Source: Styela clava
Taxonomy: Eukaryota
Assembly: GCF_964204865.1 (NCBI RefSeq)
Contig: NC_135262.1
Coordinates: 16,926,001-16,990,000, forward strand
Length of the DNA stretch: 64,000 nt
Direction: 5' to 3'
The position numbers and the translations under genes are program-made. Below the pieces are notes generated by a model. The model had not been told where the DNA came from, did no database searches, and saw only the letters and a list, made by a program, of their open reading frames with translations. This document shows, in pieces, positions 42,428 to 52,587 of this stretch (the stretch's first letter is position 1; every line of letters starts with the position of its first letter).

Positions 42428-42886
42428 TCAGGCGCTGAATGAGGGGCAGATCAGGGTCGGTATCTTGCAGTGCTGCTTGACATAGTCGTCCACAGACCCT
42501 AAAATGATTCTTCCGATAATTCCTAAACCCCTAGACCCCATAATGATTAAATTCACGTCGGATTTATTTGCCATGGATACAATTGTCTCGCCAACGCCGT
42601 TTTTATCATCGTGAATTACAAATTTGTGGCTTATTCCGAACTCCAAGCACATTGTTTCGTACTTCTTCTTTAATTCATCGTGTTTGGTCTTCCGATCTGA
42701 CAAATACTTCTCAGCTTTGCCAGGAATATATCCAACACCTCCCGCATGAACGTAAGCCGGGAGTCTGATTGGATCAGCTACGTGTAGTAAAACGACTTCA
42801 TCTCCGGCTCTATGCAGTAGTCTCGTGTAATAGTTCACAACGAAATCGTCATTTACCCCGTTTTTTATGCATAAAAGTACTCTCAT
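42428..42886 (-). CDS. Universal stress protein (UspA-like); intronless, 152 aa
   Basis: GDEVVLLHV, GETIVSMA, LIIMGSRGLGIIGRIILGSV (G-2x-G-9x-GS) and HCKIPTLIC. Confidence 0.92.
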   Translation of the reverse strand: MRVLLCIKNGVNDDFVVNYYTRLLHRAGDEVVLLHVADPIRLPAYVHAGGVGYIPGKAEKYLSDRKTKHDELKKKYETMCLEFGISHKFVIHDDKNGVGETIVSMANKSDVNLIIMGSRGLGIIGRIILGSVDDYVKQHCKIPTLICPSFSA

Positions 42887-45027: not shown

Positions 45028-48003
45028 GGGGAGAGGCAGGTTAGTTGATGCTGTAGTTTAGATGATACAGCGCTTCTCACGGCCGTGCAATGCACTTCAA
45101 GAAACTGATGCGCCACCTGGTGTTTGGCTAGAATATGTTCTTCCTTTCTGTTAGTCGTCTGACGATGTTGGTTGCAGCACGTTTAAAATTTTCGAAAAAA
45201 ATCAATTTTTAAGATCTGGAGTGAAAACGTCAAATCAAGGTAAGTTGATTATTTTTTCAGGCATTATAAATGAGCGATGCAAGCGAGTATTTCCTTGCAG
45301 TAGTGTATGATATCGCTTACATAACAGCCTACATGTTTCTGGATACTGATTTGAATTCTTCCCACTACGGCCCTTTTTTTCAAAATGGCCACAGGTTGAC
45401 TAGTTGATACAATAGTGGTTCCATTAGTTGATACGTGTATCGACTTACCCTGCTATTTATTCCATGTATTTTTTTAGCATATTTTTCAGCAAATATATTT
45501 TCAGACTTTCTTTTAACCGGGTTTTATGGTTTGCGGCATTGTCAATATTTTTACGCTGCCAATATTGTTTTCAACGTATTTTAGGTGATGCCTCAGTTCT
45601 ATAGAAGAAAAACAAACAGAGCCATAGGAACTCCCCCGGATGTGATGTCGAGGGCGGCTGACGATGTTGTTCGCGGGCGATCATTGGGGAGTGTAGCTGA
45701 AGCATTTGGCATCGATAAAATGACTTTGTCTCGTTTTATAGTCAAGCGCAAAAATAATCCTAACGCAATTACAGGTTACGCTGCTGTTGCACATTATATT
45801 ATTCCTCAGCAAATGGAAGAAGATCTGGGAAATCATGTCAAACGATTGGCCGACATGTTTTTTGGACTCTCTCTTGAACAGTGTTGTAAACTAGCTTATG
45901 AATTTGCATTTCAAAACCAGTTGTATATGCCAGTGTCTTGGAAAATCAACAAAAAAGCGGGAAAAACTTGGTGGCTAGAGTTCAAAAAACGACAAAATCT
46001 TTCCATACGGACTCCAGAGGCAACTTCACTCGGAAGGGCGACTGCATTTAATCGTCACACGGTTGGTGAATTTTTCGACAACTTAGCACAGGTCATGGAT
46101 GTGGACGATTTTCACCCTGAAGATATTTACAATCTCGATGAAACCGGGTGCACCACTGTTCAAACCCCATCTGATATTGTTACAGCCAAGGGTAAAAACA
46201 AGTGGGTGCAGCTACGTCTGCTGAGCGTGGTGAACTGGTTACGGTAGTCTACACATGGTGCCTCTGGTAATGTGCTTCCACCTATGTTTATATTTCCGCG
46301 CGTAAACTTTCACAACCACTTTATCATTGAAGGGCCACCGGGCTGCATTGGACAAGCAACAAAGTCTGGCTGGATTAATGAAGAACTTTTTCTTGTTTAT
46401 CTAGAACATCTGGTGCGCCAGACTCGTTGTACTCCCGAAAGAAAAATTCTTTTGATTTTGGATAACCACGAGTCTCATATTTCTTTACGTGCTGTTGAGA
46501 TGGCAAGATCCAATGGAGTAGTTATGCTTACTTTACCACCTCACACATCTCATCGATTGCAACCGCTTGATAAAACGGTGTATGGTCCTTTCAAAGCCAG
46601 TTATAACAGAGCGATGGAGAGTTGGCTACGTAGTCATGCTGGAAAAACTGTTACAATATATGATGTTCCTGGCATTGTAAAAGAGGCTCAAATGTCAGCA
46701 ATGACATCGAGGAATATTCTATCTGGATTTCAAAGCACTGGTATATACCCTTCCAATCGCGATATTTTTACTGATACAGATTTTGCAGCTGCAACTTTGA
46801 CGGACCGAGAAGTCGTTGATCGTGATGAACCAGGACGGTCCTCAAAATGCACGGTTCCACTGACCCCAGGCTGTAGTAATGAAAATCTTTGCACTCATAA
46901 ACCGAGGGTTAATGAATCAGCATTTCAGTTACAGAAAACGGGCAACCCAGATCCCCAGATCTTGCTCATCGTACGTATCGCCAAGCGAGATTCAAAAAAT
47001 CCCAAAAGCTCCACAAAGAAAGACCAAGCGCTCCCGAAAAAAGGAAAGACAAAGATTTTAACTTCCACGCCTGTATTAAAAGAGATTTCCCTAGAGAATG
47101 AAAAAAGAAAGAAAAACAAGAAATGCAGTTCGTGAAAAAAACTTTTCGCTACAAAAAATAGGAAAGTTCGCCCCCACAATACTAGCAATAGTTCAGAAAA
47201 GGAGTGTGCTGTTGTTAGATATGATGACACGACTGATGAAGATGAATTATCTGCAGAAGAAATCATGGGAGGTGATTACGTGGTTGTCAAAGTAGACGGG
47301 AGATCTAGAAATGTACATTACATCGCTCGTATAGATTTGCTAGAAGATAATGAGTATGAGGGAGTTTTTCTAAAGAAAGTTTCTAGTCGAGTTTCTGTCG
47401 AAGCAGAGCACACTGGTTTTGTATTTGTTCCAAATGAAGATGATGGGGCTTCATTCTCGCATGAGGGCATAATATGCAGACTACCTCAGCCAACAATTCC
47501 TGCAGGATCAGCTCGGAGATGTGTTCGACTTAAATTTGATTGCGATTTGAGTAAATGGAATGTAAATTAGAGGTTGTCTACCACCATCCAGCAAACCATT
47601 TCGTTAAACGAGTTATTTGTATTTTTTTATTTATTTTTGCCGCCGTTCCTGGTGAAACTTTCTCTCTCGTTCTTTTGAAACAAGTTATAAGTGATATTTG
47701 TGCCTCGTTCCATTTCATTTTTAAAGTAATTGCCTGCTTTTAAAAACTTTATGCAGAGTGTATCAACAAAACTACCACTGCGCATCAAGTATCCTTACCA
47801 GGCAGGATATTTGATACGTTTGACAAGAAAACTTTAGCGACTGTAAGCGCTAAGTTAGGAAATGACTGAGAGCCCCATTTTGTGGTCATGTGTGAGGAAC
47901 CTATAAATGAATAAATAGGACAAACCAGAACGGCGATTATTCGAACGGTATTTTTTATGGATCAGTAAAACTAAATTATGTATCAACTTACCTGCCTCTC
48001 CCC
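45028..48003 (+). mobile_element. Full-length pogo-superfamily DNA transposon (DD35D), about 2.98 kb
   Basis: TIRs GGGGAGAGGCAGGTTAGTTGAT / ATCAACTTACCTGCCTCTCCCC (one mismatch) and TA TSD. Confidence 0.92.
45588..47570 (+). pseudogene. Frameshifted pogo transposase (HTH + CENP-B-type HTH + DDE_1 + C-terminal beta domain)
   Basis: Catalytic motifs YNLDETG, LILDNHESH and LQPLD (35 residues between D2 and D3); homology switches frame at about 46197, 46255, 46935, 47040 and 47135. Confidence 0.88.
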
Positions 48004-49160: not shown

Positions 49161-50257
49161 TAATGACGGGATATAAACAAAGGATCACAAAGTGTAGCAC
49201 ACTGCAACATGAATAACTGAACTTAATTCTCATAACAATTATCAATTTGAGCATGAATCTGGAGCAGTTGGCGAATTTAAACAAGTGAAGAAAATGGCTA
49301 ATCCGAGAAAGACATTGAAAAAGTTTCGAACATGAACGAAGAACTTGAATCCGATGTACTCGACTTCATTTTAAAACGCGGTGTTGGACATATGAACTTT
49401 GATAAAAAATACTGGATAACATATTTTTTCAAATAAAATGAGAGCAAAAATGACCAAGCTTGGTTCAAAATATTTTCAGAACAGTCCTAGACCTTTTTTT
49501 TATCTAAAAATAATCGTGTAATTAGCGGTTATTGTGGCCTGCAGGTATTCTTACATTCATAGTCGAATATGAAGATGAAAATATATTTCCCATTCTCCGG
49601 ATGACTTTGCAAATTCTGCCATTCAAATTTTTTGTTGCTTGTTTATTGTCTATATAAAATGGCTTGTTACGTTATTATATTTCGTAATTAAGGAAATACA
49701 ATTTAATTTGAACAGGAAAAAGAAACTATCAAAGTAGGGGCGCATTTTTTTAACTTTGCCATGAGCGTCATTTATGCCGATACGCCGCTGTTTTATGCGA
49801 TTCCGTTTCATTATTCACCGATTGTCATATTTGATCATTAGTTGTCTAGGATATTTATTCGATCATCATTTTACCTTCAGTCTAAATTGAATATAAGATA
49901 TCTTTGGCGTTCTCTTGCTGTATTATGGTTTATGGGCTAATGATTTGACAACACACAATATTTTGCTGTGTGGGATAAACTATGAATCGATATCGAGAAT
50001 GTCTTATCACTAGCCCTGATTTATTTACCGGAATTGCCATCAGATGAAGTCATTTTCCTCAATGTAGGCTAAATCCGTTCACTTAATCATATCCTAATCC
50101 GGTACGAATAATGAATGAACCAAGAGTGCTATCTCGCTGTTAATCACGCATGTGTGGGCCCATATACAGGTGTATAAGAGGAAGCTAAAAAAAAACATTC
50201 TGGAACTTTTGTGTAAATGCAGTTCGTATATTTTAAACCTTAAAATCAGCAGGAACA

Positions 50258-51796
50258 ATGAGATTATTTTTATTTGCGTTTATGTCTTATGGCACGTTTG
50301 CGACAGTTTTGGGATATCAGGTGTTCGTTAGGACTCTCACAGGTAAAACCATCACTTTAGAAGTGGATGGAACTGACACAATAGAATCTTTGAAACAGCA
50401 GATTTTGGAGAAAGAAGGTACTCCAGTTCACCAACAAAGATTTATATATGCGGGTAAACAGCTTGAGGATGGAAGAACATTGGACGATTATGGAATTCAA
50501 AACGGAGCAATCTTGCATTTAATCCTACGATTATCCGGAACGATACAGGTATAGCAACTAACCCCCAAATGTACCCCATTTCATGTTGAAATCATCAAAA
50601 CAAAGTTAATTTTCCCCAAAATTCGAAAACTTTCGTAGCAAACAAATTACACCAGTTTAAGAAACATAACATGTTCCACCCAGTCATTATCAAATTAAAA
50701 TTTTTTATTCTCAAAACCTTTGGCACTGAGTGAAATAATTATATCCAAGTTCCCATCCGTACGATGTACATAATTACCCTTATTGAGATAATAGCCAATT
50801 TGGTGTAGTTTTGTAGTTACATAAGAACTAATTGGCTACACAGGTACAGTCGGTGGGTCCTTTTTGTGACCCGTAGATCAGTGGTTCGTCATACCTGCCC
50901 TAGGCTTTGCTATTTGTGAGGCCCCTCTTCAACAATGACGACATAAAAATTGTGGCCTCATAATAGGCTTTTTTTTTTGGGGGGGGGGGGGGGGGGTTGT
51001 TATGTATATATATATATGTCGTCATAAACTAAATTTGAAATTTCGAGAAATGCGAAATTTTATGACAAGATATTACGCTAATCATCAGAGTATATTTGAT
51101 ACAAAGTCGAATTTAAAAACACTGAGAAAAATTAGGGCTATAAAAAAAAATATCATGTCACCAGAAAGCCAATACCCGTTTAATGATCGCGGACAGAGGG
51201 GGGCCCAATTACTGTTAAATAAAACATCAGTAATTTATAAAAATATCATTTCATTTTTTGAAATAATCGGGTAAAAATGATATCAACCTAATTACAAAAT
51301 TAAGCAAATACCAGTTTTTAACGTTTCACACCGGCTTTATTCTGGAACAATCTTTTACAATTCAGAAACGACTTAAAACTGAATTAAGTTCAAAGTTGAA
51401 TGTCGAGGACCCTCATGCTTCAGCCTCCCTTGCCTCCTGGTAAATACGCCTCTGCTATTCATAGAATACCCAACTTAAACCAGGGTTCAATTTCTCATAT
51501 GAATATTCACTCTTGTCGAGTTCCTTTTATTCCGGAAATAATATAAAAATTTAAGCAGTGTTATATTTTCACAGATCACGGTGGACTACTTTACTAAATC
51601 GACGTTCCAACTTATTGTTACACCATCAGACACAATTGCAGAATTGAAGACTGAAATTTTGAACCAAGAAGGAATATCTACCGTGAACCACATATTAGTT
51701 TTTGATGATACCGTTTTGAATGATGCAGAGACCATAAATGATGCTGGCATCGTAAATGGTTCAGTGCTCAAGCTATTTGTGAGAGTGTTGTGCTAA
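50258..51796 (+). CDS. Predicted secreted tandem (di-)ubiquitin-like protein; 2 exons (50258-50548, 51575-51796), 170 aa
   Basis: 19-aa hydrophobic leader, UBL1 50/76 identical to ubiquitin by manual alignment, phase-0 intron CAG|GTATAG...TTTTCACAG|ATC, and a divergent UBL2 ending FVRVLC-stop. Confidence 0.85.
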
Positions 51797-52587
51797 AACT
51801 ATTATGTATAATTGTGTCAGAAGGAATTTCACATGAATACTGTTTATCGTAAAATTTATTAAGCATGGAATATAAGCTATGGAATGAATAATTTTTCGGG
51901 TGGAACTGTAATTCTTGGCATGGAGATATATAAAGTATATATAGTTTTAAATCAACTTGCAGCGTCGCCAAGGACGTAAATCACAAAATATATTTACGTT
52001 TTCTAGAAACATCGATCAAAACATTCATTATTCAAATTAGAAATGATAATTAACCTTATGATTTCTGCAAAACAAAGAATTCTAATAAACTCCAATATTA
52101 ATTTAATTCAACGGCGCTCCAGAAGTGTGTGTACCAATACGGAGGTAACTAATTTTTTTCGCCTACTTTACATCAAGTTGTGTAATGGGACCGAAACCTA
52201 TGGGCAGGGGTATATTCACTTGGCTAACACAGACAGTGCCCGAACTCGTAATCGAACTAAAATAAGGAAAATCGCCTCAATACTAAACCCAGACTGTGTC
52301 GATTCCGCGTTTAAAAGGATGATGAATAGTTTATTAATTGATTTCGTCTCGCCGGAAAGATAGGTTTAATAAATTTTGAGAATGTATCTTCCAATATCAT
52401 TCTTTACTACTATAACATCTTTCGCGAGACTCGGAAAACCCACACTACTGAATCGCATCGAAAACTATCAAGAACTGTAGGGATCCTGGGTAAGCTTAGA
52501 TATTATTTGCAGGATTTTACTCTAAGAACCGTTTACTTCTTGGGGAGTCTGGGGGGCGTTTTCGCCCACTTCGACTTATAACTAGTG

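Follow-up and report, generated by a model that had tools for sequence, protein, structure and literature searches.

A tandem ubiquitin-like gene of Styela clava with a signal-peptide-like leader and a retrotransposon in its splice donor

The cytosol and the nucleus are almost the only places of action of ubiquitin-family proteins, and the signal-peptide-bearing exceptions with which the present case was compared are effectors of parasites and factors of plastid import. In the genome of the ascidian Styela clava, two open reading frames together encode a pair of ubiquitin-like domains (UBL1 and UBL2) behind a hydrophobic leader, which raises the question of whether this animal possesses a ubiquitin-fold protein that enters the secretory pathway. 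If so, a secreted di-ubiquitin mimic in a free-living chordate relative would represent a new use of the ubiquitin fold, as well as a concrete candidate for the extracellular ubiquitin puzzle in ascidian fertilisation or immunity. If the gene were unexpressed or its product cytosolic, it would be just another divergent ubiquitin-like gene.

Gene structure and domain composition

The window, i.e., the whole stretch of 64,000 nucleotides that was analyzed, corresponds to C17:16926001-16990000 of the S. clava genome (377 Mb). The original prediction, made from the sequence, had joined two open reading frames through an intron at 50549-51574 into a protein of 170 amino acids, and had called the intron canonical. 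The join was upheld, as the 170-residue product matched letter for letter the public S. clava prediction XP_039256160.1, and both the exon junction and the start at 50258 were identical in the 170-residue model of the NCBI pipeline. The word canonical needed qualification for the donor, since from its T onwards this consists of retrotransposon sequence. The public record bears the names "polyubiquitin-like" or "ubiquitin-NEDD8-like protein RUB2". The gene model is already public, hence not new, yet it seems that nobody has described the gene: no mention of the accession was found in the literature, and a literature search combining "Styela clava" and "polyubiquitin" found nothing relevant. The features of the gene are the following:

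50173..50178, + strand: TATAAG, a TATA-like hexamer located 85 nt ahead of the ATG (pattern scan)
50258-50548, + strand: exon 1 (291 nt, 97 codons), ending CAG/GTATAG
50258..50314, + strand: leader of 19 codons, Met-Arg followed by a hydrophobic core, with -3/-1 occupied by small residues; signal-peptide-like
50315..50542, + strand: UBL1, residues 20-95 (Pfam, ubiquitin alignment, AlphaFold)
50543..50548, + strand: first two codons of UBL2, coding for Ile-Gln and closing exon 1 (ubiquitin alignment)
50549-51574, + strand: intron (1026 nt, phase 0, GT..AG), donor CAG/GTATAG
51575-51796, + strand: exon 2 (222 nt, 73 codons plus TAA)
51575..51793, + strand: remainder of UBL2, residues 98-170; acidic, ending Val-Leu-Cys
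51794..51796, + strand: stop codon TAA (open reading frame listing)
52084..52089, + strand: AATAAA nearest to the stop on its 3' side, at a distance of 288 nt (pattern scan)

The acceptor end of the intron at 51574 reads TTTTCACAG/, with a T-rich tract and CAG. Judged by their motifs, the TATAAG hexamer is a possible core promoter and the AATAAA a possible polyadenylation signal, while a candidate donor GTGAGA at 51779 (phase 0, before the final five codons) could in principle lead to a further exon. Several other elements were observed in the surroundings of the gene. Just past the first AATAAA, a repeat of ~165 nt (52106-52274) with more than 2000 candidate copies at 89-95% identity was SINE- or MITE-like. 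About 3 kb upstream of the gene, three consecutive open reading frames of 220, 287 and 101 amino acids (45585-47570, + strand) resemble a DDE-type DNA transposase that has been broken up and has a helix-turn-helix at its N-terminus, and a single-exon frame of 152 amino acids at 42428-42886 (- strand) looks like a universal stress protein (USP-like), in both cases by translation alone.

For the similarity analyses the exons were searched separately, full-length work used the public record XP_039256160.1, and in the pairwise alignment of UBL2 with ubiquitin the last two residues of exon 1 were prefixed to exon 2. Both exons matched the ubiquitin family (PF00240) above the curated Pfam cut-off of 25.4 bits: residues 22-92 of exon 1 with E 1.9e-29 and 101.7 bits, and residues 1-70 of exon 2 with E 1.2e-13 and 51.0 bits. 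Each unit has a beta-grasp fold. In the AlphaFold model (mean pLDDT 80.5, mostly 75-94 in the domains), residues 20-95 and 96-170 form two beta-grasp domains with strands and helix in ubiquitin order.

Compared with the ubiquitin of the animal itself (RPS27A and polyubiquitin genes), UBL1 was identical at 50 of 76 positions (66%), the count given in the original prediction. The predicted interaction patch and lysine set were also recovered in the alignment: UBL1 retains Leu8, Ile44 and His68 (besides Arg42 and Arg72), with Val70 replaced by Ile, and has Lys at ubiquitin positions 11, 27, 33 and 48 only, those at 6, 29 and 63 being gone. Position 1 is Tyr instead of Met, and the tail reads LRLSGT instead of LRLRGG. 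UBL2 is more distant (~35% identical to ubiquitin), has lost Phe4 and Lys6, and found no nearer relative than ubiquitin itself among solved structures. Its reported acidity (pI 4.2), its NGS sequon (one only, at residue 158) and its end in Cys rather than Gly-Gly were all found as described, Cys170 being the final residue (Val-Leu-Cys) and the sole Cys of the protein; a single sequon and a single Cys are no more than expected by chance. The ubiquitin alignment placed the intron not exactly between the two domains, but two codons inside UBL2, after Ile-Gln.

Gly-Gly is absent both from the junction (LSGT) and from the C-terminus (VLC), and therefore the usual activation, conjugation and cleavage are not possible for this di-UBL. 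Accordingly, the protein has no C-terminal Gly-Gly, free or exposed by processing, as would characterize a conjugatable modifier; nor does it have the identical repeats and Gly76-Met1 junctions of a polyubiquitin precursor, its two units being 66% and ~35% identical to ubiquitin, with no Gly-Gly-Met. The proposal of a non-conjugatable tandem di-ubiquitin-like protein, whose junction offers DUBs no Gly-Gly, was thus supported by Pfam, alignment, AlphaFold and Foldseek results: a tandem di-UBL neither conjugatable nor cleavable at Gly-Gly.

When UBL1 was compared with the ubiquitin genes of the same genome, pS ranged between 0.81 and 0.86 and pN between 0.23 and 0.25, and the reading frame was intact over the 170 codons. 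Since silent sites are saturated while replacement is ~24%, the split from ubiquitin is old, and selection has since maintained both frame and fold. These values indicate an old gene under long purifying selection rather than a recent dead copy.

No close paralogue was found in the genome, where the gene is single-copy; the next-best matches were polyubiquitin (65-67% identical), RPS27A and an intronless multi-UBL cluster on C5. No orthologue was found in the protein collections searched, from which other styelid proteomes may be absent. The search with the exon 1 open reading frame returned its own public record and then ordinary di-ubiquitins only, while the search with exon 2 (1.84 billion representatives) yielded no orthologue among the best 150 matches listed, which were long multi-UBL proteins with summed scores, below which a two-domain orthologue could rank. 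The UBL2 region and exon 2 alone shared words with almost nothing in the protein collections, and atlas searches gave generic ubiquitin clusters only. The locus is thus a real, old, single-copy, two-exon gene of S. clava without counterpart in the protein collections searched.

The C5 cluster (C5:20757992-20790823) consists of intronless open reading frames of ~240 amino acids located beside a polyubiquitin gene. The one that was read has three ubiquitin-like domains and an RLRGG end, and by translation the cluster looks like a family of conjugatable tri-UBL modifiers.

A retrotransposon within the splice donor

Comparison with dispersed repeats of the genome identified three elements inside the intron:

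50550..50794, + strand: 5' part of a long terminal repeat (LTR), 245 of 592 nt, occupying intron bases 2-246
50795..50851, + strand: terminal piece of a second dispersed repeat (copies 96-98% identical), adjoining the truncated LTR
51281..51454, + strand: older dispersed repeat (73-85% identical to its copies)

The repeat at 50550-50794 had at least 40 scored copies with 91-94% identity among 504 candidates in the genome. The family, defined by comparison with eight loci, has an LTR of 592 nt with inverted ends TATAGCA...TGCTATA and corresponds to a non-autonomous retrotransposon of ~2.3 kb, with a polypurine tract GATGGGGAGATAA and a TGG primer site; no open reading frame longer than 78 amino acids was found in the one copy checked. 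Because two of the three LTR pairs checked were 99.5-100% identical, the family is regarded as active. Two complete copies were flanked by flush 4-bp target duplications (CACG and GTAT). One copy is located at C6:7496900-7500900 (- strand), and the genome holds hundreds of copies.

At the locus under study, the inferred target duplication is CAGG (50546-50549) and the LTR starts right after it, from which it follows that the element integrated between bases +1 and +2 of the intron. Within the donor, the G is original and the T is the first base of the LTR. Moreover, the pre-insertion sequence was CAG/G and not CAG-ATC, so the intron is older than the LTR. An introner-type origin, in which the whole intron would be one transposon inserted into a continuous frame, was rejected on three grounds: the target was CAGG and not the required CAGA, the 3' end of the intron did not match the LTR end, and the remaining intron is a patchwork of other sequence. 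Elsewhere in the intron (50968-50998), a long T run followed by a long G run, beside a (TA)n tract, may mark a place where the assembly or a polymerase slipped.

The locus therefore presents a retrotransposon inside a splice donor to which it contributes the T, a natural experiment on a small scale in the tolerance of splice sites to damage. The resulting donor, GTATAG, is a chimera without the usual A at +4 and G at +5. With this composition it is probably weak, and splicing is not to be taken for granted, a point that counts against reading the gene as living. If the LTR, starting at intron base 2, had weakened or abolished splicing, the gene would be crippled and would give nothing useful, or only a read-through product of exon 1 with 98 residues (leader, UBL1 and three residues more), as the unspliced frame closes one codon into the intron. 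The activity of the family is in keeping with such a loss, and so is the youth of the insertion: the copy departs by 3.3% from the family consensus, with two small indels in 245 nt, and is thus too recent for damage to have appeared in a dead exon 2. However, the LTR happens to start with T, so that the GT donor survives together with the preceding CAG and the A at +3, and the NCBI pipeline picked the junction 50548/51575. In addition, the 513 coding bases have stayed in frame while the adjoining LTR was truncated, gained indels and was joined to another repeat, which, from such small numbers, is a weak hint of continued selection. Overall, a gene crippled at its donor seems unlikely, albeit serious enough to be kept in view.

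The leader and the route of the protein

The leader opens with Met-Arg, continues with seven core residues (Leu-Phe-Leu-Phe-Ala-Phe-Met) and closes with a stretch of lower hydrophobicity whose last residues are Thr-Val-Leu-Gly. It has the features of a classical secretory sequence, namely a positive n-region, an uncharged h-region within 7-15 residues and small residues at -3/-1. A rule filter was devised on the basis of a positive n-region, an uncharged core of 8 residues whose hydropathy averages 2.0 or more, and permitted residues at -3/-1. The leader passed it at two sites, with cleavage after residue 15 or residue 19. Among other ATG-led open frames of the window, 5 of 310 (1.6%) and 19 of 838 (2.3%) also passed the filter. 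The basic n-region, hydrophobic core and cleavage-site form noted in the original prediction were therefore recovered. In the AlphaFold model, residues 1-17 had pLDDT values below 50 and no secondary structure, and lay outside the fold. Based on these features, a signal peptide is plausibly the most natural reading of the leader.

Only two Met residues occur in the protein, at codons 1 and 9, both in the leader; the mature part is Met-free, which confirms that UBL1 and UBL2 provide no alternative start for a leaderless form. The Kozak -3 position is A at Met1 and T at Met9, giving Met1 the better context. Given that the only Met codons lie in the leader and that an in-frame TAA is found at 50234, 8 codons upstream of the ATG at 50258, every product starts in the leader.

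A language-model search with residues 1-30 gave no usable match. The DNA of promoter and leader (49950-50330) has no second copy in the genome, and on this ground the possibility that the leader was copied from another gene was rejected. A relic of a ubiquitin repeat was likewise rejected, with no significant similarity at either DNA or protein level, and a weak gapped match between promoter and UBL2 DNA (p ~0.007 across three tests) was judged to be due to chance. Upstream of the main ATG there is an open reading frame of 8 codons (50217-50243, + strand) that starts Met-Gln-Phe-Val and closes before it; this start resembles the first residues of ubiquitin, no significant similarity was found, and the resemblance is probably fortuitous.

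The overwhelming majority of ubiquitin-family proteins are cytosolic, and a secreted member has a low prior. A protein that is made and stays unsecreted was also weighed, with the leader as a membrane anchor or inert extension and the UBLs as a cytosolic ubiquitin mimic that might, for example, dock ubiquitin-binding proteins at a membrane. In line with this, UBL1 retains residues that have known cytosolic readers (Leu8, Ile44, His68, Arg42 and Arg72), the charge derived from the sequence is +2 on each side of the hydrophobic stretch, so that topology is not dictated, and ~2% of arbitrary ATG-led frames pass the same signal-peptide rules. Membrane-tethered UBLs are also known in other forms (MUB/UBL3, TMUB1). 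On the other hand, the uncharged stretch outside the fold is only 16-17 residues long and adjoins strand 1 of UBL1 with no linker, and therefore a cleaved signal fits better than a membrane span; the two good -3/-1 cleavage sites also argue against retention in the cytosol, which appears rather improbable on balance. Finally, a non-coding leader, with transcripts entering UBL1 via the AG at 50320 and the annotated start as an artefact, would be favored by the acceptor-like, in-frame TTTTGGGATATCAG/G at 50307-50321 and by trans-splicing, common in tunicates, but is very improbable given that UBL1 and UBL2, both Met-free, would have no start codon behind such a spliced leader, that no upstream coding exon is evident, that an in-frame stop lies at 50234 and a TATA-like box 85 nt ahead of the ATG, and that the public model begins at 50258.

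The preferred reading, to which we assign a probability of about 40%, is that the gene is living and encodes a non-conjugatable di-UBL which a signal peptide directs into the secretory pathway. Points in its favor include the CAG/G donor that preceded the LTR and the older repeat within the intron. The transposon-altered donor would have to be spliced, and translation would start only in the 19-residue hydrophobic leader, most likely a cleavable signal peptide. The acidic di-UBL of ~151 residues would then pass into the ER lumen, to be secreted or held in a secretory compartment. There it may serve as a soluble binding module, with UBL1 offering the Leu8/Ile44/His68 face of ubiquitin, and its single Cys, at the C-terminus, might form a disulfide with another copy of the protein or with a partner. 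Besides the altered donor, it counts against this reading that the known readers of the Leu8/Ile44/His68 face are cytosolic and that the mature part has no pair of Cys residues.

The original prediction went further, proposing a secreted mimic of linear di-ubiquitin. Its sequence statements were all borne out on checking, apart from the two corrections concerning the place of the intron and the donor. As for the mimic itself, the di-UBL architecture and the form of the leader held (Pfam, Foldseek, rule filter), while the sequon and the Cys added nothing beyond chance. That the protein is a truly secreted linear di-ubiquitin mimic, with Cys disulfides, acting in a chordate invertebrate as an extracellular ligand, decoy or component of a fertilisation ubiquitin-proteasome system, is doubtful at present. 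The literature context invoked by the prediction was confirmed both for the nematode effectors (PMC4802876) and for ascidian fertilisation, in which an extracellular ubiquitin-proteasome system of still poorly known molecular composition takes part (PMC10341865). The latter is a motive for testing the secreted reading and no evidence for it.

Relation to known ubiquitin-like systems

The closest known system is linear (Met1-linked) di-ubiquitin, which likewise has two head-to-tail ubiquitin folds without a linker. Linear di-ubiquitin chains were the best Foldseek matches (E ~1e-20, 51-53% identity), and linear di-ubiquitin or polyubiquitin precursors were the top sequence match for both domains. 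In contrast to them, the S. clava protein has a hydrophobic leader in place of Met1, a junction reading LSGT-IQ instead of RGG-MQ, no C-terminal Gly-Gly, and a second unit only ~35% identical to ubiquitin in which Phe4 and Lys6 are lost; its gene, in addition, has an intron after codon 2 of that second unit.

The tandem UBLs ISG15, FAT10 and OASL share the di-UBL arrangement and a size of ~150-165 residues. The structural comparison with linear di-ubiquitin and ISG15 suggested in the original prediction placed ISG15, OASL and FAT10 as second-tier Foldseek matches (E 1e-13 to 1e-15, 23-25% identity), with ISG15 below all di-ubiquitin entries; neither sequence kinship with ISG15 nor its LRLRGG end was found. 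ISG15 and FAT10 end in Gly-Gly and become conjugated, whereas the S. clava protein ends in Cys. To our knowledge, a signal peptide is absent from ISG15, FAT10 and OASL. The CaaX box of MUB/UBL3 is also lacking, as the Cys of the S. clava protein is the last residue and not the fourth from the end.

A ubiquitin-family domain behind a leader is found in cyst-nematode ubiquitin extension proteins of the Hs-UBI1 type, in which, as summarized in PMC4802876 citing Tytgat et al. 2004, the ubiquitin domain follows a signal peptide and the protein is released from the cell. In these effectors a single ubiquitin domain carries a short extension at its C-terminus, while the S. clava protein has two UBLs and no extension; they are injected into plant cells and act inside the host, while S. 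clava is free-living. The apicomplexan PUBL is also ubiquitin-derived and routed by a leader through the secretory pathway (PMC5487736). It functions in an import machine that derives from ERAD and belongs to a secondary plastid, and it retains a role in conjugation, whereas an ascidian has no such plastid and the S. clava protein no Gly-Gly.

Within the same genome, the tri-UBL genes on C5 are likewise ubiquitin-derived and multi-UBL. They differ in being intronless, in having three UBLs and no leader, and in ending in RLRGG, and their best match to UBL1 was only 47% identical.
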